A DNA stretch of 64,000 bases from Schmidtea nova (Eukaryota), in the NCBI GenBank assembly GCA_044892505.1, contig CM097883.1, positions 266,104,001-266,168,000 of the forward strand, written 5' to 3'. The notes under the pieces were generated by a model. The model was not told the origin of the DNA, made no database searches, and saw nothing but the letters and a program-made list of their open reading frames with translations. The first letter of the stretch is position 1. Each line of letters starts with the position of its first letter. The position numbers and the translations under genes are program-made. This document shows positions 12,651 through 55,440 of this stretch, one piece after another.

Positions 12651-13093
12651 AGTAGGTAGTTAGTGGCTCCCCAACCCAGTGGCTCCCCAACCCACCCCCC
12701 CCCTAGAAAAAAAGTGGGTTGGGGAGCCACTATGTTTTTTCGTCGATCTTTTGTATAGGAAAATTTTCGTCGATCTTTTGTATAGGAAAATTTTCGTCGA
12801 TCTTTTGTATAGGAAAATTTTGTCGGTCTTTTGTACAGGTGGGTTGGGGAGCCACTATGTTTTTGGGTCGATCTTTTGTATAGGAAATTTTTATCAATCT
12901 TTTGAATAGGATTTTCTACTCGGAGATTTTTTTCTCGGGCAAAAAGGGACTCTGAAATTTTGTACAGTGATTTTTGATCTGGTATATTTGAATAGGATTT
13001 TTGTTATGGTTATTTTGAATAGAGAATTTTATGTCGGTCTTTTGTATAGAAAAATTTTTTTCAATCTTTTCTATAGGATTTTCTTTTGTCAGT
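12651..13093 (+). repeat. Left TIR (internal copies at 21275-21720, 30059-30502 and 36926-37340)
   Basis: Reverse complement of 54995-55440; contains AGTGGCTCCCCAACCCA repeats and 27-bp CGTCGATCTTTTGTATAGGAAAATTTT repeats. Confidence 0.93.
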
Positions 13094-14598
13094 CGAGGCA
13101 TATGGCTAGAGAAACTCATAGATAAAGTATAAAACGAGCTATTAACCTGGAGTTTTATTTTCCTTTTTAAGCACAGGCTCTTTGTAAGGTCAGTTTGTTT
13201 TGGAACCAACCTACGCAGATGCTTCTCTCGTTTTTCCCACCAAGGATTAGCAGGAGTTACTAACTCTTTATCGGAGTCTTTCCCCAAGAACCAATATACG
13301 TTTTACCGCTTTATTAGCAATTGGTTTGCCTGCACACTTTACTCAGAGTGTGCATTGGTAGCAATCCCTAGAGATTACTCAGTGCCTCATCACCTTTGGA
13401 CCATCTATCACCTTTACTTACACTTGGTAAACTTCCTCTCTTTGTACTCGAGTTAGTTTATTAGTGTCGAAGTGATAGATTAATGCCAGTCGAATCATAG
13501 TGGCAAGCCACAAAATCAACGACCAACATTCAACTTACATGATAGATCAACGGATTCTTTAGAGGACAAAAGATACTTGTGGTATCCGGCTCCCCCCTGC
13601 GCTGCCCCTACCACAGGTACGTTATTAAGGCAATCGTATTACCGGCCGCGTTGACGCATGTAAACCCACTTAGCAAGCCGAGTGGTGCAGTTTATCTTTT
13701 TATAACTGGTGGTCCTACTCCCACACTGTCTTTACAACTTAACACCAACCAGCTCCGAATATCTTGCTTTCGCTGTCATTTAAACGGTGAGACTGGCACT
13801 AAGCTGCGCTGCCATTGGTTATGATAAGTAGTCATAACTCGTGTAGTCCTATTCAGCAATCTGAATAGCGTAGTTTGTCTTTTTGTAGCTGGTGGTTCTA
13901 CTCCCACGCTGCCGGACAAGCATCGTACTCATCCTCATACAAACACTAATACTCTATTAAACTCGAGGCTTTGATGATGTCTTGCCTGACTCTTCAAGAG
14001 ATTTATATACATGTTTGCGTCCAGTTTTCCCGGTTCATTATTATTATAAAGATAAAATAAAATAAAATAAAGTTAAAAGGATACGATTGTTCTTGTAGAG
14101 AAGATCGAATAGGCCTAAAGAAAACTCAAAGTAATTGAACTTACCACAGGGTCTCCTCGAATGCACGACTTGGACCTAACTAGCGGGATTTATACTAAGG
14201 GAGTTCCACCCATTCTTGCACCCTCAGCCGATCGTGCACCCACCCCTTTAAGCGAAAGGAAGACCCTCTACGGACTGTCGGGAGAGTTCTTCGCAGCTTC
14301 TTCTGTTATCCCTACAATGGGTCTCGGAAGCGGCCCCAAATCCACGAGTGAAACCTACAAAGCAATCTTTTCTTCTAAATATTTTGTAATTAAATAGTTT
14401 AATTAGATCTGCCCCCTATTTTATAATCAAGCAAGCATACAGACAAACAATCAGACAACCAGAGACTAAATAAAAAGAAAATAAGTAAACAGTAAAATAA
14501 GAAGCGAAATGTGAGTTTAATATATAGAATATATGGTTATTTTAATAATAAAGATAAAGTTATAAACCAATACTGTTATTATATAAACATACAAACTA

Positions 14599-17500
14599 TT
14601 AGTGCCAATTCCTCCAAGCGCAATACATTCTCGCCGTCCAATTTAGTACTTTCAGAGATATGAGCATGGCGTCTGACTGCGTGACACCGAATTTCTGTAC
14701 GGTGTCCCATGAATCCTCGGCCCAGATACCCCGCCAGTTCAGCGTTAACGCACCGAACTCTACCGTATCTGCCCCCTGCTCAAGGACCCAGTCACGTATC
14801 TCAATCTCATCATATACCTTGGACTTTGTAGTATTCCGTTCTCTCAGATCTGACTTTTCACTAACAATTTGTACATCCACGACCATAGCACGGCGGTCCT
14901 TGATAATTACTAAATCCGGTTTCCGTATAGTCTCTTTATACGGTATAACCGGTTCCACAAGGGTCTTCCACCCCTTCTTCCTCGCGATGTCAGCTGTAAA
15001 AAGCATCACTTTATTGTGTCGTTCCACTCGCATCCCATGCGTAGCAGTGCACTTTTGTGATATGTGGCTAAGGCTGCAGGGTAACCCACAACCCGCCTTA
15101 CATATAGATGATGAAGTGGCGGAGCCGCCATTCATACGACTGAGTCGCGTCGGGGTACTAAAAAGGTTTCCACGAACTTTGACACTGTTGACGAAGGATC
15201 TACCTGTCATCAACTTAGTCCGGGCCTTAAGCCAGTTATGAACAAAAGGCACCTTGTCGCTTTCACACAGACCCTTCCCATCTAGCTTTTTATACAACAA
15301 GTCTCGCATCGACTCGTAATAGGTATGTTTTTCGTACGCCAGGGAGTCACCAGTTTTAATAGGCTTACTCCATTTGGCTAACAAGTTTCTGACGACATCC
15401 TGCTCCACTAATCCGCGAATCCTTCCATCACTGCTATCGGCAAGCCTCTTCAATCTAGTTATCTTCGCAAACTTCACCTCAGCCAAGAGAGTAGGTACCC
15501 CCATTCCTCCATCTTTAACTTTGGAGTGAATGTACGAAAAGCACGTATCTTTGGGTAGATGTAGCCATTTGCGAACAAGCTTCCGGGTTATCTTGTCCAG
15601 TTCACAAAGCTCCAAGTCATCGGTTTCGCCTAAAATTGCTTCGTGCAAAATGCCCGGTATAAGGAAGTTAGTTAAGACTTCCAGTTTTTGTTGTGGTTTA
15701 ATAGGGGAGATAGTAATATTATTAATGCGTTCTGTAAATATTTTAGTTAAGTTATTTTTCATTTTACCCAGCGGACCAAAATAAATGCCTAGATATTTAT
15801 AAAAATCATTTGATAACAAAATGGGAAATTCCTCTTCACCATCGGCCACTCGCTCCGGCGTTATTATCCAACTGTCATTCTTCCCGTCTCTTTTGGCTAC
15901 AATGGATGCACACTTTGCAGCATTCACTGAAAGACCATTTTCACCAAGTTCTCGAAGAACAGAAGAAAGAATGTCTTGGAGTCCTTCTTTGGTCTCAGCT
16001 AGAAGGATAATATCATCAGCGTAGGCCATAATGGGATAGGTATTTCCATTCATCTTGTATCCGAGTCGGGTTTTGTAGGCTTTCTCAATCGCCAACTCAA
16101 TAATGTTATTAAAAAGTGCGGGTGAAAGCGGATCCCCTTGCTTTACACCTCTTTTGAACGTAGCTGGCGTTCCATCTACAATAGTCTCGGCGTCAGTGTA
16201 GCTATTTTCTATATAGTTTAAAAGTAGTTTGGGGTAATGGGCTATTTTTGCCGCTCTCAAAATACTGTCATGATTGACAGAATCAAAAGCTTTCTTCATG
16301 TCAATGAAGGCGAGGGCAATATTCTTTTTATTTTTACGTGCATCTGAGAGGATAGAGTCTAGTAAAATGGTATTCTCTAGACATCCATCAATGGGCTTGA
16401 ACCCTTTTTGGGCTGAAAAACTTTTATCATAGTTTAGGGTTCGCTGAGCGAGAATTTTATTTAAAACTCTAGTTATAACTGAATTTATTGAAATAGGCCG
16501 ATAATCACTTGGACTTTTTGGATTATCGGTTTTTGGTATTAGCGTTGTTCTGGAGCTTTTTAGAACCGGAGGAAGATAACCTAGATAAATAACCAAATTA
16601 AATAACTTTACCAAAACAGACGTCGGGATCGTCCTTAGTGTTGCTGTAGTAATGCCATCAGGACCACAGGCAGTCTTCAGGTCTATTTCCTTAACCGAAT
16701 TCAGAACCTCTGAATCGGTTATAGGTAAGACCATATTACTCTCCTCAGTTACATTTTCTACAGCTCTTGTATCAGCATCTGATTCCCTTTCGAAAACCCC
16801 ACGCCAATACTCACCCAGACCCGTAACTGGTTCGATACCACTCACCAAAGAATCGACCTTCCCCCCGAGTATCACTTTGGCTGCCTCACTTCTGTCTTTT
16901 TTGAATAGTTCTTGGAGAGCTCCATATGTTTTTCTTCGGAACTCTTTCTTCAGATGCTTCTTCGCATCCTTGGACGGCTTGACTAGTGGGCTAACCTTAC
17001 TACGGGGTGGCTTTCCTTTGGGACGATGGCTAAAGGTTATATCATTACAATATATCTCTAGACATCTTCTTTTTTCATCAGACGCAGGAGGACCGTGGAT
17101 AATATAGTCAAGGTCGCGCTCTTGTCAATCATCAATACCTTCCTTCTTTGGTAGTGCGGAGAGGTACTTGATGATTGCTTCTTTGTCCGATTCATCGTGG
17201 GCGAACTGAACCTGCTGCTTGTTTTGCGGTATGCAAATATTGTCGTCAAGGTTTTCCCTTAACACTTGTAATATTTTACAATACCTAACCGTTTTCAAGT
17301 GTGCTCTAATGGACTCCTTGGAGCGATCAGCACTAACGGTCCCTAATTTGTACATCAAAACTCCCCTATTACATTCGAGTCTCTCACATGCCACATGCAC
17401 CTTAGCCATGCGGACTTCCTCCTCAACAGTCCAAATTGCGTTACGCGAGTTGATTTTATTTTTATTTATTTTATTTATCTTAGCGGCATCGTGTTTATCA

Positions 17501-17625
17501 CGATGTTTGTTACTGGTGTGTACCCCCTTCCCAATTTTAGTCGAAAAAACTGCTTCACAAAAATCACAAGCGAAAGTGTCGGCGGCTTCCTCTCCCTTCG
17601 TTTTTAATTTATCATTTGTTTTCAT
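14599..17625 (-). pseudogene. R2 ORF copy 1 with W-to-stop near 17125
   Basis: Track ORFs 17125-17625 and 14599-16875 are in one frame, split by TGA where other copies have TGG; QGDPLSP and YADD intact. Confidence 0.92.
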
Positions 17626-17899
17626 TTTTCATTTTTCAGTTTTTAAGGGAGTGTTTTACAGTAAGACACCCTCCCTTGGTAATGTCTCACCGTCCTAAAA
17701 TTAACCTACGTAGATACCTTACCTAGTTCTTTAGTGGTGGTGGTCGTATACAATCTTATTCTTAAACATTATTATTTTCCTAGCATGAAAGCCCACATAC
17801 AACCAGTAGTTTGTTGTATGTGGGCTTTCGTGTTAGCATGCTCCCTGATACCAGAGCATTACTTTAAAAGACATATACAACATACAATATAACTACATA

Positions 17900-18110
17900 T
17901 TTAAAAGTCTGTGCAAAATGCCCACATAGTACCCCTTGGGGCACTATGTGGGCAATTATACATTACAACTTTTGTACACAAATGAAAATACATTATACAC
18001 AATGTGACATGAGTACTATTAACTACATATTTAAAAGTCTGTGCAAAATGCCCACATAGTACCCCTTGGGGCACTATGTGGGCAATTATACATTACAACT
18101 TTTATACACA
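17900..18110. repeat. ~130-bp duplicated unit with a 17-bp-stem hairpin (also ~26510-26740, ~35290-35510, and 3 copies at ~49890-50170)
   Basis: TGCCCACATAGTACCCC-TT-GGGGCACTATGTGGGCA. Confidence 0.9.
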
Positions 18111-18219
18111 AAATCATAATTTACAAATACAGATTGGTGGGGAGGACATACTGGGCCAGTCCTCTCCTTATATAATACCATAGTTAATACTTAAATACCT
18201 GAGTACTAATTTATTTCAA

Positions 18220-18358
18220 GTACCTAAAATACCTGGAAGCCTTAAAATACCTGAAATACCTAAAATACCTAAAATACCTAGGATACCTAAAATACCTAAG
18301 ATACCTAAAATACCTAAAATACCTAAAAATACCTAAAAATACCTAAAATACCTGAAAA
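18220..18358. repeat. 9-bp minisatellite (AATACCTAA/AATACCTAC)n in the R2 5' region (also 26845-27060 and 35625-35842)
   Basis: Read directly; copy number differs between R2 copies. Confidence 0.92.
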
Positions 18359-18989
18359 TAGAATGACAATATGGTTAACAATTAATATATTTAATAATTT
18401 AAGGGTCAAGGAAAATTTTGGCGTGGCGGTGTTGGGTTAAGGGGGAGATCTCGATCTAGTTAGTACTTATAAACTAGTCAATTCTCGTACCAACATGTTT
18501 CCGGTTGAGTAGTGGCCTACTACTCCACCGAAAACTGTCAGTCTGATCTCCCTTATCCGCCCTTACCCTAGCGGCTGGTTTGAACTTATGTAGCAGTACT
18601 ACACAGACCCAATCACGTTTATAGTGAGAAAGGTATCACTCTGATCTGCCGGACGCACCCTACCAGTGTAGGATCTACTCTATAGGGACTATAGAGGGTC
18701 TATCCCGCCTTGTTATTGGAGAGATAGAACGATGTAAATTTGCAAACACTAACTATGCGTAAGCTATATATTACCTTTTTTAAGGACAGGTATAAAGTTG
18801 ACCACTACCCCAAGAACGCGACTGCTTTAGACGCTTTGTTCAAGGCGAACACATGGTACTCGATAGCCCTTAATGAGAGTAATGCGGCACCGAATTGTCG
18901 AAGCACCGAAGCACTCCAATTCTTCTACCGCAGACCTAAGATCAATTGGCAATCAGTGGTATTTTTCACCCACCAACTGACAAACACTT

Positions 18990-19830
18990 AGAATTTTACT
19001 ATATAGCTAGGCTATATAGAACAAAATCATTTTTATAGTGGGATTTGCCACCACCGAGTTTACTAAGCAACTAGGCCACTTAGAACAATTCCTTTGGCAA
19101 TGAGAATTGCAAAACACCTGTACACAGGACCGACAATAACGTGTCGACGACAAGACCTGATTAACCCGGGCCCTTATCAGTAATCAGCAGTATGTTTCAC
19201 CCACCAACTACCAAACGTCCCGTATTTTTACTATATAGCTAGGCTATATAGAACAAAATCATTTTTATAGTGGGAATTGCCACCACTTATGTAACCAACA
19301 TCGAGCCAACATCGAGTTTACTAAGCAACTAGGCCACTTAGAACAATTCCTTTGGCAATGAGAATTGCAAAACACCTGTACACAGGACCGACAATCACGT
19401 GTCGACGACAAGACCTGATTAACCCGGGCCCTTATCAGTAATCAGCAGTATGTTTCACCCACCAACTACCAAACGTCCCGTATTTTTACTATATAGCTAG
19501 GCTATATAGAACAAAGTCAATTTATAGTGAGATTTGCTACCACTGATATAACTAACATCGAGCCAACATCGAGTTTACTAAGCAACTAGGCCACTTAGAA
19601 CAATTCCTTTGGCAATGAGAATTGCAAAACACCTGTACACAGGACCGACAATCACGTGTCGACGACAAGACCTGATTAACCCGGGCCCTTATCAGTAATC
19701 AGCAGTATGTTTCACCCACCAACTACCAAACGTCCCGTATTTTTACTATAAAGCTAGGCTATATAGAACAAAGTCAATTTATAGTGAGATTTGCTACCAC
19801 TGATATAACCAACATCGAACCAACCACGAT
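18990..19830. repeat. ~258-bp tandem repeat x3+ in the R2 5' region (also ~27745-28620)
   Basis: Unit begins ACTATATAGCTAGGCTATATAG at ~18998, 19229, 19488 and 19745. Confidence 0.92.
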
Positions 19831-20256
19831 TATTACCCTCACTATATTTTACCCAACATCGACCAGATCGTTCAATCAGTTCCTCTAGTTTCAAAGGCGT
19901 CCCCACACTACACTCGCAGAATAAGTACTAATGTATATATTCGCTGGTAGATTTAAGATCCATTATAAGAATTAACACTGTTTTTAACAAAAGAGTGAGA
20001 GTAATTCTTAGTATAATCTCAGTACAGTCTTCCTAGTTCGGTTACTCCGGGCGTCCCACAGAGATTCTCACTAGAAGATCGGATCTTAAACTTCATGTTG
20101 CCATGAAGGTATATTTTCATATACTGTCACCTTAAAAAGGCACTTTCGGACAGATATATATTACCAAAAGTGAACCTTTCAAAACGCTACTATAGAACGT
20201 AACGATAATTAAAATCACCCCCTGAAGGAAGGACAATGAGATCAAACGACTATTAC

Positions 20257-20326
20257 CGAGTTTACGTTTTTGGTTCCATATTTTCATATGGTTAACAGGA
20301 AGACCCCGTGAAGGCTTGTAAACTCG
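20257..20326 (-). ncRNA. HDV-like ribozyme core, R2 copy 1
   Basis: Same motif as 47374-47443 with two substitutions in the P2/P3 junction region. Confidence 0.6.
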
Positions 20327-20591
20327 AACTTCTTTCTCACGCACATATGTACTAAACTGTACTATTGTACTAGAAAGTTGTAAATCGCAAACATCCAGCC
20401 AACAATTACGGTAGATGTTGTATTATATTCACCATGGCAGGTTCCAATTGTCCTTTCCTCGGTTATAGTCAGTAACCTAAGAAAATACTATGATAAATCA
20501 TAGTTTACTACAACTCCGGATATCTCATGACACCACTTTGTAAGTTATAGTTATTTAAGTTAGACAATTGGAGATCCTAGCAAATTAGACT

Positions 20592-20840
20592 TAGTCCGTG
20601 CCAGTTCTAAGTTGACCGTTTAGTGTACAACGACGATCGTCAATCCGAAGACCAACAACCAAAGCAAAATTCGCCCATCAACCAGTTAAAAAAGTACCAT
20701 CTCAACACCATTTCAAGTTGCCTCAAAACAGCATCAAAACAGCTCAATTCTATACCAACTGACTTCTTAACTAAGCCCATCATACCCGGTCCTTAGAGCC
20801 AATCCTTTTACCGAAGGTACGGATCTAATTTGCCGACTTC
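20592..20840 (-). rRNA. 28S: 28S rRNA gene fragment (~250 bp) at the 5' end of R2 copy 1
   Basis: GAAGTCGGCAAATTAGATCCGTACCTTCGGTAAAAGGATTGGCTCTAAGG ... CAACTTAGAACTGGCACGGAC match conserved LSU motifs flanking an expansion segment. Confidence 0.9.
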
Positions 20841-21274
20841 TTTTTTTCTTACCATCGCGTCTGTGTGCGCATTATGATTTTCATGGTTATCGCGTCTGTG
20901 TGCGCGTTTTGTTGGGACTTTTATTTGAGGTTTGGAATAAATTGATTGAGAAATAAAATCGTGGAGTTTAAAAATCTGGTTGTTTTATCGTGTGATTTGT
21001 TGGATAAAATTGAATTTCTGGGAGTTTTGAAATCTTTGCTGAGTAATTCTTTGTGATTGATTCGAATTTTCTGAAATGACATCAAGCTTGATCTTATTAC
21101 ATTTTAATCATGTTGGCAACGTTCTCATACAAGTAGACTCTAATTCGATAGTTGACATTCAAACTGAAGACGATGCTTTGGAAACGAAAGAGTGTATCTC
21201 TATAGATTGTGAAAATAATATTATATCCTCAAGAGATATCAATCCTACTTTTCAATTTAAGAAAGTTAATTGTG
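20841..21274 (+). repeat. Copy of BEL LTR flank attached to array unit 2 (also 29625-30058, 36505-36925 and partial 38590-38717)
   Basis: Matches ~12219-12650 and is preceded by a T-tract. Confidence 0.93.
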
Positions 21275-23223
21275 AGTAGGTAGTTAGTGGCTCCCCAACC
21301 CAGTGGCTCCCCAACCCACCCCCCCCTCCCTAGAAAAAAAGTGGGTTGGGGAGCCACTATGTTTTTTCGTCGATCTTTTGTATAGGAAAATTTTCGTCGA
21401 TCTTTTGTATAGGAAAATTTTCGTCGATCTTTTGTATAGGAAAATTTTGTCGGTCTTTTGTACAGGTGGGTTGGGGAGCCACTATGTTTTTGGGTCGATC
21501 TTTTGTATAGGAAATTTTTATCAATCTTTTGAATAGGATTTTCTACTCGGAGATTTTTTTCTCGGGCAAAAAGGGACTCTGAAATTTTGTACAGTGATTT
21601 TTGATCTGGTATTTTTGAATAGGATTTTTGTTATGGTTATTTTGAATAGAGAATTTTATGTCGGTCTTTTGTATAGAAAAATTTTTTTCAATCTTTTCTA
21701 TAGGATTTTTTTTTGTCAGTCGAGGCATATGGCTAGAGAAACTCATAGATAAAGTATAAAACGAGCTATTAACCTGGAGTTTTATTTTCCTTTTTAAGCA
21801 CAGGCTCTTTGTAAGGTCAGTTTGTTTTGGAACCAACCTACGCAGATGCTTCACTCGTTTTTCCCACCAAGGATTAGCAGGAGTAATAAACTCTTTATCG
21901 GAGTCTTTCCCCAAAAGCCAACATACGTTTTACCGCTTTATTAGCAATTGGTTTGCCTGCACACTTTACTCAGAGTGTACATAGGTAGCAATCCCTAGAG
22001 ATTACTCAGTGCCTCATCACCTTTGGACCATCTATCACCTTTACTTACACTTGGTAAACTTCCTCTCTTTGTACTCGAGTTAGTTTATTAGTGTCGAAGT
22101 GATAGATTAATGCCAGTCGAATCATAGTGGCAAGCCACAAAATCAACGACCAACATTCAACTTACATGATAGATCAACGGATTCTTTAGAGGACAAAAGA
22201 TACTTGTGGTATCCGGCTCCCCCCTGCGCTGCCCCCACCACAGGTACGTTATTAAGGCAATCGTATTACCGGCCGCGTTGACGCATGTAAACCCACTTAG
22301 CAAGCCAAGTGGTGCAGTTTATCTTTTTATAACTGGTGGTCCTACTCCCACACTGTCTTTACAACTTAACACCAACCAGCTCCGAATATCTTGCTTTCGC
22401 TGTCATTTAAACGGTGAGACTGGCACTAAGCTGCGCTGCCAATGGTTATGATAAGTAGTCATAACTCGTGTAGTCCTATTCAGCAATCTGAATAGCGTAG
22501 TTTGTCTTTTTGTAGCTGGTGGTTCTACTCCCACACTGCCGGACAAGCATCGTACTCATCCTCATACAAACACTAATACTCTATTAAACTCGAGGCTTTG
22601 ATAATGTCTTGCCTGACTCTTCAAGAGATTTATATACATGTTTGCGTCCAGTTTTCCCGGTTCATTATTATTATTAAGATAAAATAAAATAAAATAAAGT
22701 TAAAAGGATACGATTGTTCTTGTAGAGAAGATCGAATAGGCCTAAAGAAAACTCAAAGTAATTGAACTTACCACAGGGTCTCCTCGAATGCACGACTTGG
22801 ACCTAACTAGCGGGATTTATACTAAGGGAGTTCCACCCATTCTTGCACCCTCAGCCGATCGTGCACCCACCCTTTAAGCGAAAGGAAGACCCTCTACGGA
22901 CTGTCGGGAGAGTTCTTCGCAGCTTCTTCTGTTATCCCTACAATGGGTCTCGGAAGCGGCCCCAAATCCACGAGTGAAACCTACGAAGCAATCTTTCCTT
23001 CTAAATATTTTGTAAATAAGTAATTTAATTAAATCTGCCCCCTATTTTATAGTCAAGCAAACATACAGACAAACAACCAGACAACCAGAGACTAAATGAA
23101 AATAAGTAAACAATAAATAAAATAAGAAACGAAATGTGAGTTTAGTATATAGAATATATGGTTATTTTAATAATAAAGATAATGTTATAAACCAATACTG
23201 TTATTATATAAACATACAAACTA

Positions 23224-29040: not shown

Positions 29041-29110
29041 CGAGTTTACGTTTTTGGTTCCATATTTCCATATGGTTAACAGGAAGACCCCGTGAAGGCC
29101 CGTAAACTCG
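29041..29110 (-). ncRNA. HDV-like ribozyme core, R2 copy 2
   Basis: P2 CGAGTTTACG/CGTAAACTCG, L3 TTCACG, P4 CCATAT-GGAA-ATATGG. Confidence 0.7.
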
Positions 29111-38589: not shown

Positions 38590-38717
38590 TTTTTTTCTTA
38601 CCATCGCGTCTGTGTGCGCATTATGATTTTCATGGTTATCGCGTCTGTGTGCGCGTTTTGTTGGGACTTTTATTTGAGGTTTGGAATAAATTGATTGAGA
38701 AATAAAATCGTGGAGTT

Positions 38718-44429: not shown

Positions 44430-44630
44430 TTTATTAAACATTTTTATTAACCATGCTAAACAGTGCTACCAAGTGTTTTTTGTCATTGGATTCTAGTATC
44501 AGATTCTGTTATATTCAATTCACATCAACATTGACGATATGTTTTTTATCAATAGCGGCGGATAATAAAATCCCATTGGATCAAACATGTGTATTTTATC
44601 GGGTTTCACATAAACTGCAATCATGAAAAT
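44430..44630 (-). pseudogene. Adenain-like (Maverick/Polinton PRO) cysteine protease relic
   Basis: H(W)IAVYVKPDKIHMFDPMGFYYPP...IEYNRI*Y*NP...TW*HCLAWL resembles HW.A....FDPFG...YN...Q....CG.HCL; stops are consistent with C-to-T decay. Confidence 0.7.
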
Positions 44631-44649
44631 AAAATTTGAATCTTTTGCA

Positions 44650-45145
44650 AGTAAAAACCATTACAAAAGAGGTTCTGCTACCAAAGGTTCTGTTAGAAAG
44701 GTTCTGTTAGAAAGGTTCTGTTAGAAAGGTTCTGCTACTTGATAAATTTAATGAAAATCTATCAATAATGGTATATAAGTGAATATACAATATGAATCTT
44801 TTACAGGTAAAAACCATAACAAAAGAGGTTCTGCTACCAAAGGTTCTGTTAGAAAGGTTCTGCTACGTTATAAATTTAATGAAAATTTATCAATAATAGA
44901 ATATAAGTGAATATACAATATGAATCTTTTACAGGTAAAAACCATCACAAAAGAGGTTCTGCTACCAAAGGTTCTGCTAGAAAGGTTCTGCTACGTGATA
45001 AATTTAATGAAAATGTATCGATAATGGTATATAAGTGAATTTACAATATGAATCTTTTTCATGCAAAAACCAACACAAAAGAAGTTCTTCTACTAAGGTT
45101 TTGTTACCAAGGTGCTGTTACTAAGGTTATATTAGAAAAGTTCTG
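44650..45145. repeat. ~125-bp tandem repeat containing AAAGGTTCTG(C/T)TA subrepeats
   Basis: Read directly, about 4 units. Confidence 0.88.
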
Positions 45146-45715
45146 ATACTGAATATAATTTTTAATAATGAATTTTACCAAAATATTTATTGATTTTTCA
45201 TTTTAAATATTTTCAGTGAATTATTAATATTAAAATTTTTAATACTTTTATTATTATTATTAACACGTAATAATTTTTGTAACATTAAATCTGTTTCGAA
45301 TATTCTTTATGAAATTTATAAAAGTTGATATAATAAGAAAAACTAATCAATTTATTCACAAAGGGCAAATTATGTATGTGATGCAGTTACCTGTTTGGGT
45401 ATAGTAACTTTTCATTGAATTGTGACAGTTTTTATCATAATTCGATGCATTACAATATTTTTTTTTGATATAATCTGTCTATTAAAAGATTATGCATAAA
45501 TAATTAATTATCATATTAAAATAAAGTGTGTATCTGCACACAAAAATATCGATAAATAAAAATTAATAAAAATGTTAAACGAAATCTGATTGGTTAATTT
45601 TAAATTATGAAAACATATATAAATTGATTAAAAATTACAGATTTCATTAAAAATGTATCAACTTAAAAGTAAGTGTAATTAATTTTAAATGATTATTTTT
45701 AATATTTTATTCTAG

Positions 45716-46194
45716 AATCTTCGAACAAAAAGATGTTGAAACAAGAAGTAATGAAAATTATTCTTGAAGAAAATTCTATTTCGGCATCAAATTTGGTTAT
45801 GAATCCTGCAGTTCAATTTCTACAATACTCGATGGAATATTTAAAATTTCCAATCATTTATTCATTTAAAGTATATATTTATTTAATTAAAATAAATTTC
45901 TAATATTTTTTTTTATAGGAACCTGTTACATTGAAACAATGCATGTATAATCTTCAAGTGGGGAAAATTGGAGATATTGATAGACGAAATATTTCAGAAA
46001 TTTTGTTAGCAATCAACAAAGAAATACAATTTAATGAAGCTTTTACGTATATGAATTGCAATAAAGATTGTAATTTGAAAAATTTCGATGAAAATTCGAT
46101 ATATCAAATTAAGATAATGATTCAAGGCTTCAAAGAATCTAATGTTGTTGTCAAGCCTGTTTGGAAAATTATAGAAACAAATATATGCGAATAA
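45716..46194 (+). CDS. Hypothetical two-exon ORF remnant (intron ~45871-45918)
   Basis: GTATAT...TTTTTTATAG intron joins two open frames; no recognisable domain. Confidence 0.3.
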
Positions 46195-46862
46195 AATTTA
46201 TTTATCAAATCTTATCTTTTCATTTTAATTTTTTTTTGTTTTGGTTAATTTAAATTTTTAATAACAATTATTTAATGTGTTAAATTTATTACCATTTAAA
46301 ATCGATTAATTTTTTATTAAAAAAAAATAATTAATTTTATTATCATAATTATTCTAAATTGATTTTGTTTTAATAATTGATTATACGTTTAAAATTAAAA
46401 TTCAAATTAATTTTCTTTAATATTTCCCGGCAACAATAATTAATTCGGAATTTGATATATATTCGAATATAAATCAAATTCCGAATTAATTATTGTTGCC
46501 AAGAAATATTAAAGAAAATTAATTTGAATTTTAATTTTAAACGTATAATCAATTATTAAAACAAAATCAATTTAGAATAATTATGATAATAAAATTAATT
46601 ATTTTTTTTTAATAAAAAATTAATCGATTTTAAATGGTAATAAATTTAACACATTAAATAATTGTTATTAAAAATTTAAATTAACCAAAACAAAAAAAAA
46701 TTAAAATGAAAAGATAAGATTTGATAAATAAATTTTATTCGCATATATTTGTTTCTATAATTTTCCAAACAGGCTTGACAACAACATTAGATTCTTTGAA
46801 GCCTTGAATCATTATCTTAATTTGATATATCGAATTTTCATCGAAATTTTTCAAATTACAAT
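46067..46862. repeat. ~800-bp spacerless palindrome centred at 46464/46465
   Basis: Arms are reverse complements with a few mismatches; centre TATATTC|GAATATA. Confidence 0.95.
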
Positions 46863-46863
46863 T

Positions 46864-47108
46864 TCGGCAAATTAGATCCGTACCTTCGGTAAAAGGATTG
46901 GCTCTAAGGACCGGGTATGATGGGCTTAGTTAAGAAGTCAGTTGGTATAGAATTGAGCTGTTTTGATGCTGTTTTGAGGCAACTTGAAATGGTGTTGAGA
47001 TGGTACTTTTTTAACTGGTTGATGGGCGAATTTTGCTTTGGTTGTTAGTCTTCGGATTGATGATCGTCGTTGTACACTAAACGGTCAACTTAGAACTGGC
47101 ACGGACTA
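46864..47108 (+). rRNA. 28S: 28S rRNA gene fragment at the 5' end of the right-arm R2
   Basis: TCGGCAAATTAGATCCGTACCTTCGG...GGATTGGCTCTAAGG...CAACTTAGAACTGGCACGGACTA. Confidence 0.9.
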
Positions 47109-47373
47109 AGTCTAGTTTGCTAGGATCTCCGATTGTCTAACTTAAATAACTATAACTAACAAAGTGGTGTCGTGAGATACCCGGAGTTGTAGTAAACTAT
47201 GATTTATCATAGTATTTTCTTAGGTTACTGACTATAACCGAGGAAAGGACAATTGGAACCTGCCATGGTGAATATAATATAACATCTGCCGTAATTGTTG
47301 GCTGGGTGTTTCCGATTTACAACTTTCTAGTACAATAGTACAATTTAGTACATATGTGCGTGAGAAAGAAGTT

Positions 47374-47443
47374 CGAGTTTACGGGCCTTCACGGGGTCTT
47401 CCTGTTAACCATATGGAAATATGGAACCAAAAACGTAAACTCG
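47374..47443 (+). ncRNA. HDV-like ribozyme core, right-arm R2
   Basis: P2 CGAGTTTACG/CGTAAACTCG, P3 GCC/GGT, L3 TTCACGG, P1-3' TCTTCCT, P4 CCATAT/ATATGG, J4/2 AACCAAAAA. Confidence 0.7.
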
Positions 47444-47901
47444 GTAATAGTCATTTGATCTCATTATCCTTCCTTCGGGAGGTGATTTTAATTATCGTTA
47501 CGTTCTATAGTAGCGTTTTGAGAGGTTCACTTTTGGTAATATATATATGTCCAGAAGTGCCTCTTTAAGGTGATAGTATATGAAAATATACCTTTATGGC
47601 AACATGAAGTTTAAGATCCGATCTTCTAGTGAGAATCTCTGTGGGACGCCCGGAGTAACCGAACTAGGAAGACTGTACTGAGATTATACTAAGAATTACT
47701 CTCACTCTTTTGTTAAAAACAGTGTTAATTCTTATAATGGATCTTAAATCTACCAGCGAATATATACATTAGTACTTATTCTGCGAGTGTAGTGCGGGGA
47801 CGCCTTTGAAACTAGAGGAACTGATTGAACGATCTGGTCGATGTTGGATAAAATATAGTGATGGTAATAATCGTGTTTGGTTCGAGGTTGGTTATATCAG
47901 T

Positions 47902-49347
47902 GGTAGCAAATCTCACTATAAATTGACTTTGTTCTATATAGCCTAGCTATATAGTAAAAATACGGGACGTTTAGTAGTTGGTGGGTGAAACATACTGCTG
48001 ATTACTGATAAGGGCCCGGGTAAGCAGGTCTTGTCGTCGACACGAGATTGTCGGTCCTGTGTACAGGTGTTTTGCAATTCTCACTGCCAAAGGAATTGTT
48101 CTAAGTGGCCTAGTTGCTTAGTAAACTCGATGTTGGCTCGATGTTGGTTATATAAGTGGTGGCAATTCTCACTATAAAACTGATATTGTTCTATATAGCT
48201 TAGCTATATAGTCAAATTCTAAGTGTTTGCCAGTTGGTGGGTGAAAAATACCACTGATTGCCAATTGATCTTAGGTCTGCGGTAGAAGAATTGGAGTGCT
48301 TCGGTGCTTCGACAATTCGGTGCCGCATTACTCTCATTAAGGGCTATCGAGTACCATGTGTTCGCCTTGAACAACTACGTCTAACGCAGGCGGGTTCTTG
48401 GGGTAGTGGTCAACTTTATACCTGTCCTTAAAAAAGGTAATATATAGCTTACGCATAGTTAGTGTTTGCATTCTTACATAGTTTTATCTTGCCAATAACA
48501 AGGCGGGATAGACCCTCTATAGTATATAGTCTCTATAGAGCAGATCCTACCACAGGAAAAATCATAATGGACCCATCAACGTTATGATCAGGCGAGGGTA
48601 GGGTACGTCCGGCAGATCAGAGTGGTGGCAATTCCCACTATAAAAATGATTTTGTTCTATATAGCCTAGCTATATAGTAAAAATACGGGACGTTTAGTAG
48701 TTGGTGGGTGAAACATACTGCTGATTACTGATAAGGGCCCGGGTAAGCAGGTCTTGTCGTCGACACGAGATTGTCGGTCCTGTGTACAGGTGTTTTGCAA
48801 TTCTCACTGCCAAAGGAATTGTTCTAAGTGGCCTAGTTGCTTAGTAAACTCGATGTTGGCTCGATGTTGGTTATATAAGTGGTGGCAATTCTCACTATAA
48901 AACTGATATTGTTCTATATAGCTTAGCTATATAGTCAAATTCTAAGTGTTTGCCAGTTGGTGGGTGAAAAATACCACTGATTGCCAATTGATCTTAGGTC
49001 TGCGGTAGAAGAATTGGAGTGCTTCGGTGCTTCGACAATTCGGTGCCGCATTACTCTCATTAAGGGCTATCGAGTACCATGTGTTCGCCTTGAACAACTA
49101 CGTCTAACGCAGGCGGGTTCTTGGGGTAGTGGTCAACTTTATACCTGTCCTTAAAAAAGGTAATATATAGCTTACGCATAGTTAGTGTTTGCATTCTTAC
49201 ATAGTTTTATCTTGCCAATAACAAGGCGGGATAGACCCTCTATAGTATATAGTCTCTATAGAGCAGATCCTACCACAGGAAAAATCATAACGGACCCATC
49301 AACGTTATGATCAGGCGAGGGTAGGGTACGTCCGGCAGATCAGAGTG
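47902..49347. repeat. ~723-bp tandem duplication in the right-arm R2 5' region
   Basis: GGCAGATCAGAGTG ends at 48624 and at 49347, with matching interiors. Confidence 0.9.
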
Positions 49348-50460
49348 ATACCCTTCTCACTATAAACGTGAATGGGTCTGTGTAGTACTGCTACATAAGT
49401 TCAAACCAGCCGCTAGGGTAAGGGCGGATAAGGGAGATCAGACTGACAGTTTTCGGTGGAGTAGTAGGCCACTACTCAACCGAAAACATGTTGGTACGAG
49501 AATTGACTAGTTTATAAGTATTAACTAGATCGAGATCTCCCCCTTAACCCAAGCACCGCCACGCCAAAATTTTCCTTGACTATTAATTCTTTTGATTTTA
49601 TTAATTTTATTAATTATTAATCATACTATCATTTTATTTTCAGATCCTAACTTAACTACATCTATATTATATTACACTTTATTTTATATCTCATTCTAGA
49701 TTCCCCATCATCTGGATTATTTATTCTAGGTTCATCACCACTTTTCTAGGTAATTATGTATTGGAGATATAAAGGAAAATAGGCATCTAATTATTATCAA
49801 TTTAGTATTATATAAGGAGAGGACTGGCCCAGTATGTCCTCCCCCCCATGGTTATTTATAAATTTAATTTTTGTATAAAGGTTATAGTGTATAATTGCCC
49901 ACATAGTGCCCTAAGGGGCACTATGTGGGCATTTTGCACAGACTTTTAATATGTATACTATATATAATGTATTCTTATCTATATATAAAGGTTGTAATGT
50001 ATAATTGCCCACATAGTGCCCCAAGGGGCACTATGTGGGCATTTTGCACAGACTTTTAATATGTATACTATATATAATGTATTCTTATCTATATATAGAG
50101 GTTGTAATGTATAATTGCACACATAGTGCCCTAAGGGGCACTATGTGGGCATTTTGCACAGACTTTTAATTATTATCATTATTATTATTATTATTATCAT
50201 TATTATTGGTACGATTATTAATGTTTAATTCTTTTTGATGTTCTGCTAGCACGAAAGCCCACATACAGCAAACTACTGGTTGTATGTGGGCTTTCATGCT
50301 AGGAAAATAATTATAATACTTAGGAATAAGACTGTACACGACCACCACCACTAAAGAACTAGGTAAGGTATCTATGTAGGTTAATTTTAGGACGGTGAGA
50401 CATTACCAAGGGAGGGTGTCTCATTGTAAAACACTCCCTTAAAAAACCAAACCATGAAAG

Positions 50461-53400
50461 ATGAAGCCTACAAAACAAACAATTACGAAGGGAGAGGAAG
50501 CCGCCGCCACTTTCGCTTGTGATTTTTGTGAAGCGATTTTTCCAACTAAAATTGGGAAGGGGGTACACACCAGTAACAAACATCGTGATAAACACGATGC
50601 CGCTAAGATAAATAAAATAAATAAAATCAACTCGCGTAACGCAATTTGGACTGTTGAGGAGGAAGTCCGCATGGCGAAGGTGCATGTGGCATGTGAGAGA
50701 CTCGAATGTAATAGGGGAGTTTTAATGTACAAATTAGGGACCGTTAGTGCTGATCGCTCCAAGGAGTCCATTAGAGCACACTTGAAAACGGTTAGGTATA
50801 GTAAGATATTACAGGTGTTGAGGGAAAACCCTGATGATAATATTTTCATACCACAAAACAAGCAGCAGGTTCAGTTCGCCCACGATGAATCGGACAAAGA
50901 AGCAATCATTAAATACCTCTCCGCACTACCAAAGAAGGAGGGTATTGATGATTGGCAAGAGCGCGACCTGGACTATATTATCCACGGTCCTTCTGCGTCT
51001 GATGAAAAAAGAAGATGTCTAGAGATATATTGTAATGATATAACCTTTAGCCATCGTCCCAAAGGAAAGCCACCCCGTAGTAAGGTTAGCCCACTAGTCA
51101 AGCCGTCCAAGGATGCGAAGAAGCATCTGAAGAAAGAGTTCCGAAGACAAACGTATGGAGCTCTCCAAGAATTATTCAAGAAAGACAGAAGTGCGGCAGC
51201 CAAAGTGATACTCGGGGGGAAGGTCGATTCTTTGGTGAGTGGTATCGAATCCGTTACGGGTCTAGGTGAGTATTGGCGCGGGGTTTTCGAAAGGGAATCG
51301 GAGGCTGATACAAGAGCTGTAGAGACTGTAACTGAGGAGAGTAATATGGTCTTACCTATAACCGGTTCAGAGGTTATGAATTCGGTTAAGGAAATAGACC
51401 TGAAGACTGCCTGTGGTCCTGATGGCGTTACTACTGCAACACTAAGGACGATCCCGACGTCTGTATTGGTAAAGTTATTTAATTTGGTTATTTATCTAGG
51501 TTATCTTCCTCCGGTTCTTAAAAGCTCCAGAACAACGCTAATTCCAAAAACCGATAATCCAAAAAGTCCAAGCGATTATCGGCCTATTTCTATAAATTCT
51601 GTGATAACTCGAGTTTTGAATAAAATTCTCGCTCAGCGAACCCTAAATTACGATAAAAGTTTTTCAGCCCAAAAAGGGTTTAAACCAATAGATGGATGTC
51701 TAGAGAACACTATTTTACTAGACTCCATCCTCTCTGACGCACGTAAAAATAAAAAGAATATTGCCCTCGCCTTCATTGACATGAAGAAAGCTTTTGATTC
51801 TGTCAATCACGACAGTATTCTGCGAGCGGCAAAAATAGCCCATTACCCCAAACTACTCTTAAATTATATAGAAAATAGCTACACTGACGCCGAGACTATT
51901 GTAGATGGAACGCCAGCTACGTTCAAAAGAGGTGTAAAGCAAGGGGGCCCGCTTTCACCCGCACTTTTTAATAATATTATTGAGTTGGCGATTGAGAAAG
52001 CCTACAAAACCCAACTCGGATACAAGATGAATGGAAATACCTATCCCATTATGGCCTACGCTGATGATATTATCCTTCTAGCTGAGACCAGAGATGGACT
52101 CCAAGACATTCTTTCTTCTGTTCTTCGAGAACTTGGTGAAAATGGTCTTGCAGTGAATGCTGCAAAGTGTGCGTCCATTGTAGCCAAAAGAGACGGGAAG
52201 AATGACAGTTGGATAATAACTCCGGAGCGAGTGGCCGATGGTGAAGAGGAATTTCCCATTTTGTTATCAAATGATTTTTATAAATATCTAGGCATTTATT
52301 TTGGTCCGCTGGGTAAAATGAAAAATAATCTAACTAAAATATATACAGAACGCATTAATAATATTACTATTTCCCCTATTAAACCACAACAAAAACTGGA
52401 AGTCTTAATTAACTTCCTTATACCGGGCATTTTGCACGAAGCAATTTTAGGCGAAACTGATGACTTGGAGCTTTGTGAACTGGATAAGATGACCCGGATG
52501 CTAGTTCGCAAATGGCTACATCTACCCAAAGATACGTGCTCTTCGTACATTCACTCCAAAGTTAATGATGGAGGAATGGGGGTACCTACTCTCTTGGCTG
52601 AGGTGAAGTTTGCGAAGATAACCAGATTGAAGAGGCTTGCCGATAGCAGTGACGGAAGGATTCGCGGATTAGTGGAGCAGGATGTTGTCAGAAACTTGTT
52701 AGCCAAATGGAGTAAGCCTATTAAAACTGGTGACTCCCTGGCGTACGAAAAACATACCTATTACGAGTCGATGCGAGACTTGCTGTATACAAAGCTAGAT
52801 GGGAAGGGTCTGTGTGAAAGCGACGAGGTGCCTTTTGTTCATAACTGGCTTAAGGCCCGGACTAAGTTGATGACAGGTAGATCCTTCGTTAACAGTGTCA
52901 AAGTTCGTGGAAACCTTTTTAGTACCCCGACGCGACTCAGTCGTATGAATGGCGGCTCCGCCACTTCATCATCTATATGTAAGGCGGGCTGTGGGGATCC
53001 CTGCAGTCTTAGCCACATATCACAAAAGTGCACTGCTACGCATGGGATGCGAGTAGAAAGACACAATAAAGTGATGCTTTTTACAGCTGATATCGCGAGG
53101 AAGAAGGGTTGGAAGACCCTTGTGGAGCCGGTTATACCGTATAAAGAGACTATACGAAAACCGGATTTAGTAATCATCAAGGACCGCCGTGCTATGGTCG
53201 TGGATGTACAAATTGTTAGTGACAAGTCAGATCTGAGAGAACGGAATGCTACAAAGTCCAAGGTATACGATGAGATAGAGATACGTGACTGGGTCCTTGA
53301 GCAGGGGGCAGATACGGTACAGTTTGGTGCGTTAACATTGAACTGGCGGGGTATCTGGGCTAAGGATTCATGGGACACCGTACAGAAATTCGGTGTCACA

Positions 53401-53481
53401 CAGTCAGATGCAATGCTCATATCTTTGAAGGTACTAAACTGGACGGCGAGAATGTATTGCGCTTGGAGGACTTGGCACTAG
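50461..53481 (+). CDS. R2-type protein, 1006 aa
   Basis: Same domain order as the other copies; QGGPLSP in place of QGDPLSP; different N-terminus. Confidence 0.95.
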   Translation: MKPTKQTITKGEEAAATFACDFCEAIFPTKIGKGVHTSNKHRDKHDAAKINKINKINSRNAIWTVEEEVRMAKVHVACERLECNRGVLMYKLGTVSADRSKESIRAHLKTVRYSKILQVLRENPDDNIFIPQNKQQVQFAHDESDKEAIIKYLSALPKKEGIDDWQERDLDYIIHGPSASDEKRRCLEIYCNDITFSHRPKGKPPRSKVSPLVKPSKDAKKHLKKEFRRQTYGALQELFKKDRSAAAKVILGGKVDSLVSGIESVTGLGEYWRGVFERESEADTRAVETVTEESNMVLPITGSEVMNSVKEIDLKTACGPDGVTTATLRTIPTSVLVKLFNLVIYLGYLPPVLKSSRTTLIPKTDNPKSPSDYRPISINSVITRVLNKILAQRTLNYDKSFSAQKGFKPIDGCLENTILLDSILSDARKNKKNIALAFIDMKKAFDSVNHDSILRAAKIAHYPKLLLNYIENSYTDAETIVDGTPATFKRGVKQGGPLSPALFNNIIELAIEKAYKTQLGYKMNGNTYPIMAYADDIILLAETRDGLQDILSSVLRELGENGLAVNAAKCASIVAKRDGKNDSWIITPERVADGEEEFPILLSNDFYKYLGIYFGPLGKMKNNLTKIYTERINNITISPIKPQQKLEVLINFLIPGILHEAILGETDDLELCELDKMTRMLVRKWLHLPKDTCSSYIHSKVNDGGMGVPTLLAEVKFAKITRLKRLADSSDGRIRGLVEQDVVRNLLAKWSKPIKTGDSLAYEKHTYYESMRDLLYTKLDGKGLCESDEVPFVHNWLKARTKLMTGRSFVNSVKVRGNLFSTPTRLSRMNGGSATSSSICKAGCGDPCSLSHISQKCTATHGMRVERHNKVMLFTADIARKKGWKTLVEPVIPYKETIRKPDLVIIKDRRAMVVDVQIVSDKSDLRERNATKSKVYDEIEIRDWVLEQGADTVQFGALTLNWRGIWAKDSWDTVQKFGVTQSDAMLISLKVLNWTARMYCAWRTWH

Positions 53482-54994
53482 CAGTTTGTATGTTTATATA
53501 ATAAAAGTATTCTTTTTAATATTATCTTTATTATTAAAATAAACATATACTTTATATACTAACGTTACGTTTAATTTTCTTATTGTTCTCATTGTTAATA
53601 TGCTTATATATATTTTTAGTCTCAGGTTGCATGATTGTTTGTCTGTATGTTTGCCTGTTTTATAAAATAAGGGGCAGATCTAATTAAAATAATCGTTAAA
53701 CTAAAAACATTTAGAAGGAAAAATTGCTTTGTAGGTTTCGCTCGTGGATTTGGGGGCTGCTTCCGAGACCCATTGTAGGGATAACAGAAGAAGCTGCGAA
53801 GAACTCTCCCGACAGTCCGTAGAGGATCTTCTTTAGCTCAGAGGGTGGGTGTACGATGAACTGAGGGTGCAAGAGTGGGTGAAATTCCCTTATAAATCCC
53901 GCTATTAGGTTCAAGTCCTACATTCGAGAAGATCCTGTGGTAAGATCATTACTTTGAGTTTTCTTTAGGCATATTCGATCTTCCCTACAAAAACAACCGT
54001 ATCCTCTTAAAGTTTATTCTATTTTATTTTATTTTATTTTATATATATAATAAACCGGGAAAACTGGACGCAAACATGTATATAAATCTCTTGAAGAATC
54101 AGGCAAGACATTATCAAAGCCTCGAATCTAATAGAGTATTAGTGTTTGTATGAGGATGAGTACGATGCTTGTCCGGCAGCGTGGGAGTAGAACCACCAGC
54201 TACAAAAAGACAAACTACGCTATTTAGATTGCTGAATAGGACTACACGAGTTATGACTACTTATCATAACCAATGGCAGCGCAGCTTAGTGCCAGTCTCA
54301 CCGTTTAAATGACAGCGAAAGCAAGATATTCGGAGCTGGTTGGTGTTAAGTTGTAAAGACAGTGTGGGAGTAGGACCACCAGTTATAAAAAGATAAACTG
54401 CACCACTCGGCTTGCTAAGTGGGTTTACATGCGTCAACGCGGCCGGTAATACGATTGCCTTAATAACGTACCTGTGGTGGGGGCAGCGCAGGGGGGAGCC
54501 GGATACCACAAGTATCTTTTGTCCTCTAAAGAATCCGTTGATCTATCATGTAAGTTGAATGTTGGTCGTTGATTTTGTGGCTTGCCACTATGATTCGACT
54601 GGCATTAATCTATCACTTCGACACTAATAAACTAACTCGAGTACAAAGAGAGGAAGTTTACCAAGTGTAAGTAAAGGTGATAGATGGTCCAAAGGTGATG
54701 AGGCACTGAGTAATCTCTAGGGATTGCTACCTATGCACACTTTGAGTAAAGTGTGCAGGCAAACCAATTGCTAATAAAGCGGTAAAACGTATGTTGGCTT
54801 TTGGGGAAAGACTCCGATAAAGAGTTTATTACTCCTGCTAATCCTTGGTGGGAAAAACGAGTGAAGCATCTGCGTAGGTTGGTTCCAAAACAAACTGACC
54901 TTACAAAGAGCCTGTGCTTAAAAAGGAAAATAAAACTCCAGGTTAATAGCTCGTTTTATACTTTATCTGTGAGTTTCTCTAGCCATATGCCTCG

Positions 54995-55440
54995 ACTGAC
55001 AAAAAAAAATCCTATAGAAAAGATTGAAAAAAATTTTTCTATACAAAAGACCGACATAAAATTCTCTATTCAAAATAACCATAACAAAAATCCTATTCAA
55101 AAATACCAGATCAAAAATCACTGTACAAAATTTCAGAGTCCCTTTTTGCCCGAGAAAGAAATCTCCGAGTAGAAAATCCTATTCAAAAGATTGATAAAAA
55201 TTTCCTATACAAAAGATCGACCCAAAAACATAGTGGCTCCCCAACCCACCTGTACAAAAGACCGACAAAATTTTCCTATACAAAAGATCGACGAAAATTT
55301 TCCTATACAAAAGATCGACGAAAATTTTCCTATACAAAAGATCGACGAAAAAACATAGTGGCTCCCCAACCCACTTTTTTTTCTAGGGGGGGGGGGTGGG
55401 TTGGGGAGCCACTGGGTTGGGGAGCCACTAACTACCTACT
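54995..55440 (-). repeat. Right TIR
   Basis: Reverse complement of 12651-13093; ends CCTACT followed by the TSD ATTGTG. Confidence 0.93.

Follow-up and report, generated by a model that had tools for sequence, protein, structure and literature searches.

R2 retrotransposons beside a 28S-like 17-mer in both inverted ends of a gene-less DNA transposon of Schmidtea nova

R2 is a textbook site-specific retrotransposon, and it is under development as a tool for safe-harbour gene insertion. Here we describe a 64-kb window of the planarian Schmidtea nova (the whole stretch of 64,000 nucleotides analysed; assembly GCA_044892505.1, contig CM097883.1, positions 266,104,001 to 266,168,000, forward strand) in which R2 copies occupy both arms of a DNA transposon that is itself inserted in a BEL/Pao retrotransposon. 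Every R2-family 3' end in the transposon that adjoins an inverted end does so across a 17-nucleotide (nt) sequence resembling the 28S ribosomal RNA (rRNA) gene just downstream of the canonical R2 site. The analysis covers a single locus, with one copy of the transposon within the window, and positions are counted from the first letter of the window.

The insertion and its inverted ends

The insertion measures 42,790 bp, begins with AGTAGG, ends with CCTACT and is flanked by an exact 6-bp duplication, ATTGTG, so that the outer flanks read ATTGTG/AGTAGG on the left and CCTACT/ATTGTG on the right. The interrupted sequence has an uninterrupted second copy in which ATTGTG occurs once, at 6024-6029. 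BLAST comparison of the window with itself paired 5498-6030 with 12121-12651 (94%) and 6024-6252 with 55441-55669 (93%). The interrupted sequence and its uninterrupted copy are the two long terminal repeats (LTRs) of a BEL/Pao element, whose 5.9-kb interior gave Pfam matches to RVT_1, Pao peptidase A17 and integrase H2C2, plus a weak match to DUF1759 that fell below the Pfam cut-off; its coding region consists of at least six separate open reading frame (ORF) pieces. These data confirm an insertion of 42,790 bp that has AG...CT ends and an exact duplication of 6 bp. The initial annotation of this DNA had described these termini, terminal inverted repeats of ~440 bp, the exact target-site duplication and the empty site at 6024-6029, and all of them were found. 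The ~8-kb effective inverted repeat that it proposed corresponds to the arms at 12651-20836 and 46864-55440, which are inverted copies of 8.2 and 8.6 kb, and the proposed nesting of BEL, then the element, then growth of an array is likewise supported.

The two terminal inverted repeats (441 and 444 bp) differ at 6 of 444 sites, a divergence of 1.4%. The 22-nt terminus AGTAGGTAGTTAGTGGCTCCCC starts at 12651 on the plus strand and its reverse complement ends at 55440 on the minus strand; three further plus-strand copies lie inside the element, at 21275, 30059 and 36926, against a shuffle expectation of 0. In the left inverted end, four direct repeats of 27 bp and some longer modules accompany a terminal hairpin of 16 bp (about 12664-12730). 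At the tip there are two occurrences of the motif GTGGCTCCCCAACCCA, and its complement is found twice further inward (region 12664-12730 and 12841-12856, and likewise in each inverted-end copy); pairing of the two makes a perfect hairpin of 16 bp that encloses a C-run and an A-run. The GTGGCTCCCCAACCCA repeats are candidate sites at which an enzyme moving the element may bind.

In Mavericks the inverted ends span 46-1447 bp (mean 402), the duplications measure 6 bp and the end motifs are of the (AGT)2 or (AG)3 type (PMC8097293); the 6-bp duplication is described as a Maverick/Polinton trait (PMC8097293, PMC10045372), and Polintons have been reported from planarian genomes (PMC8532177). The element resembles them in its 6-bp duplication, present on both sides and once in the empty site, in inverted ends whose length falls within that range, and in its terminus, AGTAGG, which agrees with AGTAGT, the (AGT)2 motif, at five of six positions. 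IS3EU/GingerRoot, another superfamily with 6-bp duplications, ends in TA..TA or TG..CA (PMC10045372), and membership was rejected on the AG..CT termini. Unlike Mavericks, the element has no core genes, a satellite interior and repeated subterminal modules: pPolB, integrase, ATPase, protease and the major and minor capsid proteins were all absent from the non-R2 interior (38720-46863) in Pfam searches at E-values up to 1. The ends fit Maverick best; since neither a Maverick gene nor a remnant of one was found, the element is not filed as a Maverick and is a gene-less element with Maverick-type ends, not classifiable as a Maverick. The label 'Maverick/Polinton-like' given to it initially is thus borne out by the end features, inverted repeats and 6-bp duplication and not by any gene or gene remnant.

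Between the arms lie 8,144 bp (23.7% G+C) made up of diverged subterminal modules, three satellite arrays and a 796-bp palindrome. Outside R2, this interior (38720-46863) contains no ORF longer than 87 aa, and Pfam searches of ORFs of at least 60 aa in 37500-46900, together with two small ORFs in the 5' untranslated region (UTR) of R2, gave no match even at E = 1. No inverted similarity was found inward of the R2 sites, so the inverted repeat of the base element stops at R2. The satellite in the middle of the element (42055-43836) has a GC skew of -0.89 and a 21-bp unit arranged in higher-order repeats of 109-369 bp. A single nucleotide separates the right arm of the palindrome from the 5' end of the R2 in the right arm. 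Snap-back of second-strand synthesis is a junction class described for R2 insertions (PMC11204384), and by analogy the palindrome may be a product of such an event.

R2 copies and the tandem array of the left arm

The R2 ORFs encode proteins of 1006-1009 aa whose best match among solved structures was Bombyx R2 (E = 1e-121), from the reverse transcriptase through the CCHC motif and endonuclease; the alignment spans Bombyx residues 305-1088, with a weaker match for the N-terminal finger, and Pfam RVT_1 was matched as well. At the N-terminus, one CCHH finger is followed by a Myb-like stretch (read by eye, with no domain match), which is the D-clade layout. A single ORF with zinc finger and Myb, reverse transcriptase, C-terminal CCHC motif and restriction-like endonuclease is the arrangement of D-clade R2 such as that of Bombyx mori, and the 3' junction, directly before TAGCC... 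28S-type sequence, is also shared. These copies differ from D-clade R2 in lying outside the 28S gene with only 17 nt of 28S-like sequence, in their length of 7.7-8.1 kb and in that Rfam detects no ribozyme of the hepatitis delta virus (HDV) type. Their closest R2 relatives, in a search of 5.8 billion proteins, are only 32-35% identical. Three of the four R2 ORFs are intact, the broken one being that of the first left-arm unit (U1).

Each full-length copy has a 3' UTR of ~1.5 kb and a repeat-rich 5' UTR of 3.2 kb. The latter contains a 9-bp array of 15-24 copies, a 258-bp array of 3-3.5 copies and 110-bp repeats that form long hairpins (18137-18428 and 19006-19824; in the right arm 47864-49366 and 49874-50170; equivalents in U2 and U3). 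Repeat copy numbers vary among the R2 copies, and the right-arm 5' UTR has a 723-bp duplication. The R2 5' end has a fold z-score of -2.1; its last 108 nt are identical between the arms, and its 5' 249 nt are kept in a short relative described below. With curated thresholds, Rfam found no rRNA and no ribozyme in the whole window, nor was any transfer RNA found there; with E-values up to 5 over 12000-21400 there was again no rRNA or ribozyme, HDV-like ones included, and the only hits were hairpin look-alikes of microRNAs.

R2-clade families outside 28S are known from flatworms, among them R2NS-1_SMed, which belongs to the D clade (PMC5035012). R2NS-1_SMed and R2NS-1_CSi resemble the present copies as flatworm R2-clade elements outside 28S. 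Unlike them, the R2NS families insert without site preference, the 30 printed flanks of each family sharing no sequence (PMC5035012); in a comparison by these printed flanks, none from either family resembles the junction found here.

By self-comparison, the left arm is repeated in tandem as U1 (12206-20830), U2 (20831-29614), U3 (29615-36504), a short U4 and a last fragment, U5. Three and a half of these left-arm copies form tandem units that reach beyond the border of the element: each opens with ~440 bp of the BEL LTR that lies to the left of 12651, with 0 mismatches to the true flank over 398 bp. Because the units carry this outside flank, ~26 kb of the 43 kb arose locally after insertion, and the whole is not the single 43-kb mobile unit for which it had been taken.

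At the U1/U2, U2/U3 and U4/U5 junctions, the exact R2 5' end is joined to the LTR at the equivalent of ~12213, and the homology of the right arm stops at the same R2 nucleotide as these three tandem junctions (20836/46864). At the U3/U4 junction, U3 lacks 1.9 kb of its 5' end, and the LTR piece of U4 ends within ~5 nt of the ~12213 position. U5 shares 4 nt with the element modules at its joint and is read as a severely 5'-truncated copy. Retro-copying characteristically leaves a fixed 5' end at the RNA start, a shared 3' end bearing an A-tail, copies truncated at the 5' end, and microhomology; from these marks in the array we infer that it was RNA-mediated. Tandem duplication of the left arm at the DNA level was rejected on the A17 tail and the two 5'-truncated copies; it is also disfavoured by the U1 and U2 bodies, which differ by 34 nt with a dN/dS of 0.16, set against 2 differences in ~840 sites of flank and inverted end. 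R2 is stringent, and its copying normally begins at the 3' UTR of the element itself. The array is similar to LINE-1 3' transduction in its copied downstream flank, A-tail, 5' truncation and microhomology, and differs in that the copies landed beside their source as an array. The features of the locus are listed in Table 1.

Table 1. Positions of the features of the insertion and of its target site (U1-U5, units of the left arm; SIDE, short internally deleted element)
Feature	Position	Strand	Remarks
5' LTR of host BEL/Pao, with empty site 6024-6029	5498-6252	+	left edge hidden by an N run
Left target-site duplication, ATTGTG	12645-12650	.	single occurrence in empty site
Left terminal inverted repeat, 441 bp	12651-13091	+	starts AGTAGG; self-comparison
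28S-like 17-mer, U1	13092-13108	-	15/17; read as downstream half of R2 target
R2 copy U1, full length, 7,728 bp	13109-20836	-	self-comparison
R2 gene of U1	14599-17625	-	one in-frame stop, no frameshift
Junction J1 and outside-flank copy (BEL LTR, ~12213-12650 equivalent)	20837-21274	+	
Inverted-end copy 2	21275-21718	+	unit U2
28S-like 17-mer, U2	21719-21735	-	
R2 copy U2, full length, 7,885 bp	21736-29620	-	ORF 23224-26250 intact, 1008 aa
Junction J1 and outside-flank copy of U3	29621-30058	+	
Inverted-end copy 3	30059-30500	+	unit U3
28S-like 17-mer, U3	30501-30517	-	
R2 copy U3, without ~1.9 kb of 5' end	30518-36504	-	ORF 32002-35031 intact, 1009 aa
A17 tail on R2 sense strand (T17 on +), junction J2	36505-36521	-	not in full-length R2
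Outside-flank copy of U4	36522-36925	+	
Inverted-end copy 4, one 27-bp repeat fewer	36926-37338	+	unit U4
28S-like 17-mer, U4	37339-37355	-	
Non-coding R2 relative, 1.23 kb, SIDE-like	37356-38585	-	
Junction J1 and 128 nt of outside flank, U5	38586-38719	+	100% identical to 12219-12346
Subterminal modules of element, 75-87% like inverted end	38720-39280	+	left side only
AT-rich non-coding interior	39281-46066	.	tandem repeats of 423 bp, 21/109 bp (C-rich strand) and 128 bp
Perfect palindrome, two 398-bp arms, no spacer	46067-46862	.	abuts 5' end of right R2
R2 copy, right arm, full length, 8,116 bp	46864-54979	+	ORF 50461-53481 intact, 1006 aa
28S-like 17-mer, right arm	54980-54996	+	
Right terminal inverted repeat, 444 bp	54997-55440	-	self-comparison
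Right target-site duplication, ATTGTG	55441-55446	.	read at right flank

A 28S-like 17-mer at the R2 3' junctions

As comparator we used the 20-nt oyster 28S flank just 3' of canonical R2 given in S1 Fig of Kojima et al. 2016 (PMC5035012). Its first 17 nt, with up to 3 mismatches allowed, matched five times in the 64 kb against an expectation of 0.10. All five matches adjoin R2-family 3' ends, and each agrees at 15 of 17 positions and shares the same two mismatches. The 17-mer lies ~442 bp from the tip of the element, between the R2 body and the inverted end. Relative to it the R2 junction is canonical, yet there is no rRNA gene in the window. The earlier observation that R2 joins the same point of the inverted repeat in both arms therefore holds, with the bodies ending at 13109 and 54979 instead of 13094 and 54994.

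In silkmoth and fruit fly, the finger-Myb module of D-clade R2 protects positions -2 to +20 of the downstream half-site (PMC11204384), and the 17-mer spans most of this footprint region. We infer from the sequence that the 17-mer would act as a half-site recruiting an otherwise canonical R2. The proposal that R2 targeting had switched to the terminal inverted repeat does not fit this arrangement, in which R2 sits at its canonical position beside a 17-nt 28S-like half-site.

Comparable cases are known from Drosophila, where the spacer of D. ananassae contains a 22-bp R1 site of 28S origin that attracts R1, where R1 copies lying elsewhere than in 28S have carried along up to 14 nt of downstream 28S sequence, and where R2 copies occur outside the ribosomal DNA (rDNA) in several species (PMC2718515). 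The likeness lies in a short 28S fragment that attracts R-elements outside the gene, in the few nt of downstream 28S sequence and in the tandem R-element arrays. Unlike the Drosophila mimics, the one described here is in both inverted ends of a DNA transposon, and unlike the Drosophila arrays, its array units carry ~880 bp of read-through flank.

The short unit U4 bears on which side of the junction the 17-mer belongs to. Its flank, inverted end and 17-mer are 100% identical to those of U1-U3, whereas the body is 55-85% identical, beginning with its very first base, and 6 extra nt (CTCTAG) lie between body and 17-mer. This break in identity at the R2 body, together with the intervening CTCTAG, places the 17-mer on the target side, and CTCTAG sits where the junction variation of an independent insertion is expected. 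The U4 body has the 5' 249 bp of R2 at 99.5%, a diverged R2-like 3' end and no ORF; its middle 830 bp gave one weak R2 match, 72% over 160 bp. SIDEs and template jumps of R2 have been described in Drosophila (PMC3414825). As in R2 SIDEs, the U4 element is non-coding, keeps an R2 5' end and an R2-like 3' end, occupies the R2 site and has its own junction; unlike them, its middle 830 bp is barely R2-like, so that it is not a simple recent deletion of its neighbours.

Divergence between arms is unevenly distributed. When U2 is compared with the right arm, 6 of 444 sites differ in the inverted ends, none in the 17-mer and 10 in the outer 882 nt of R2; the next 608 nt of R2 have 75 differing sites and 26 gap columns, the ORF has 139 differences in 3021 sites (4.6%), and the last ~1 kb of the R2 5' end shows scarcely any. 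For this pair of ORFs dS was 0.149 and dN 0.021 (dN/dS 0.14, p = 3e-27 against neutrality), and for U1 and U2 dN/dS was 0.16 (p = 3e-7). Arm-to-arm copying followed by neutral decay was rejected, given a dS of 0.15 and a dN/dS of 0.14 against 1.4% divergence of the inverted ends. The mainly synonymous ORF differences point to a pool of R2 copies under selection as the source of the bodies, which, judging from these substitution patterns, appear to have come from it wholly or in patches, by separate insertions or by later conversion.

Origin of the locus and its surroundings

We favour, with a probability of roughly 0.5, a history in which a gene-less transposon carrying a 28S half-site in both ends was used repeatedly by R2 and was enlarged by a read-through array. 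A non-autonomous DNA transposon of ~9 kb would have inserted into the 3' LTR of the BEL/Pao element with a 6-bp duplication, its inverted ends carrying the 15/17 half-site ~442 bp from the tip. A single-zinc-finger D-clade R2 would then have settled at the canonical position beside the half-site in both arms, and the site would have been used or renewed repeatedly from a broader pool of R2 copies under selection, probably in the rDNA; the mosaic bodies with mostly synonymous differences and the U4 relative with its own junction argue for such repeated use or renewal. A transcript starting at the R2 5' end would have read through the 17-mer, the inverted end and ~440 nt of the LTR outside, and each read-through copy would have been laid down directly upstream of the resident R2 to produce the left-arm array. 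The differing U1 and U2 bodies would require either template switching, which is known for the R2 reverse transcriptase (PMC3414825), or later conversion.

Several observations weigh against this history. The single locus holds no unoccupied inverted end to show that the 17-mer predates R2, and the upstream half of the 28S site was found beside none of the R2 5' ends examined. A conserved tail of the R2 3' UTR has been reported for seven R2 families (PMC5035012), and the 17-mer could be such a tail, which we regard as a weaker alternative. When the two arms are compared, R2 is ~99% alike in its outer 0.9 kb and inner ~1 kb but 5-12% diverged in between, a pattern that gene conversion after a single insertion could also produce. 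Further, the Maverick assignment is drawn from end features alone, Rfam detects no ribozyme or rRNA, and the array of near-identical 8.7-kb units is taken from the assembly as given.

We also considered that the element is a Maverick of 43 kb and that an R2 lineage, having switched from 28S to the inverted end, has adopted the Maverick ends as its home and travels along with the transposon. R2-family elements, the distinct short relative among them, do occupy one shared position in five inverted-end copies, those of both arms included, three of four ORFs are intact with purifying selection, and flatworm R2 families off 28S are known (PMC5035012). However, an interior without Maverick genes or remnants, a canonical R2/28S junction that argues for retained specificity, and a ~26-kb local array carrying outside flank, with a single element copy at hand, make this account unlikely. 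A different reading of the five 17-mers is that a single accidental R2 insertion outside the rDNA brought 17 nt of co-transcribed 28S sequence into one inverted end and was copied to the other arm through inverted duplication or conversion at the DNA level, with conversion patches from rDNA R2 acquired later. The two mismatches common to all five 17-mers would follow naturally, as would the ~99% likeness of the inverted end and outer 0.9 kb of R2 between arms, and for R1 the co-insertion of as much as 14 nt of 28S sequence from downstream is on record (PMC2718515). We nevertheless hold it to be distinctly doubtful: the right arm ends at the R2 5' end, where the inner DNA is unrelated to that of the left arm, leaving no two-sided homology for conversion; the ORFs diverge by 4.6% with a dN/dS of 0.14; and at this very point U4 carries another body with another junction.

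That there is no DNA transposon at all, the 441 bp being an R2 3' tail in a head-to-head R2 pair that was primed from both staggered nicks of one target and so imitates inverted ends with a duplication, appears highly improbable. A canonical R2/28S junction separates the body from the 441 bp, which in U4 is 100% identical to that of the other units although the adjoining body is 25-45% diverged from its first nucleotide on; related modules occur without R2 at 38720-39280, and 8.1 kb of unrelated interior would be left unexplained, even if a 3' UTR could well contain a terminal hairpin and short repeats, and even if a Penelope-like palindrome in the same window shows that inverted retro-copies of this kind arise here. 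We attach equally little weight to an assembly artefact, in which near-identical repeats were wrongly joined within the array or where the arms connect. Units of 8.6-8.8 kb that are 98-99% alike are hard for assemblers, but there are no N runs in 12651-55440, the flanks on both sides match a single empty site to the exact nucleotide, and the units have private differences: they vary in repeat counts, and a stop, a truncation, an A-tail and an unlike body each mark individual units.

The locus is a new setting for known behaviours, namely target-mimic insertion, extra-rDNA copies, SIDEs and transduction, and not a new kind of element. In the favoured history of repeated R2 use, 17 nt of downstream half-site in unrelated DNA coincide with repeated and precise R2 occupancy, which bears on how short a sequence may suffice to guide R2, and the locus shows how R2 copies can persist outside rDNA. 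It also suggests that ~880 nt of downstream flank can travel with a stringent element, and that such an element can assemble a tandem array locally from RNA. A more speculative extension, to which we give little credence, is that a Maverick-ended family with half-sites provides R2 with a second, mobile home outside the rDNA, in which copies stay intact and selected, can be moved and enlarge the locus. For annotation, the locus carries a warning that a giant 'Maverick' may be a small gene-less element inflated by retro-copies.

Outside the insertion, the window contains N runs at 2337-2604, 5269-5497 and 60098-60237. A Penelope-like element with an inverted-duplicate structure (2645-5268; arms 2645-3570 and 4341-5268, 99%) has N runs on both sides, and its ORF at 3562-4752 encodes RVT_1 and a GIY-YIG nuclease. 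Amid many transposons, the window also has fragments, which may be exons or retro-copies, of three host genes unrelated to one another, namely proteasome alpha-6, CGI-121/TPRKB and a TCP-1 chaperonin (55493-56113 -, 56563-56874 - and 1665-2261 +); the proteasome fragment beside the element, which the BEL element may have interrupted, is closest to flatworm proteins, at 51-58% identity. Towards the right edge, an ORF of 488 aa at 60708-62174 (-) has an ISG20-like DEDDh exonuclease domain (PDB 7yw5, E = 1e-7), and one of 440 aa at 62506-63828 (-) has no match in Pfam or PDB. At the left edge, the ORF at 580-1278 (+) contains DUF5641, the usual C-terminus of BEL/Pao Pol, and is the tail of a second BEL-type element.

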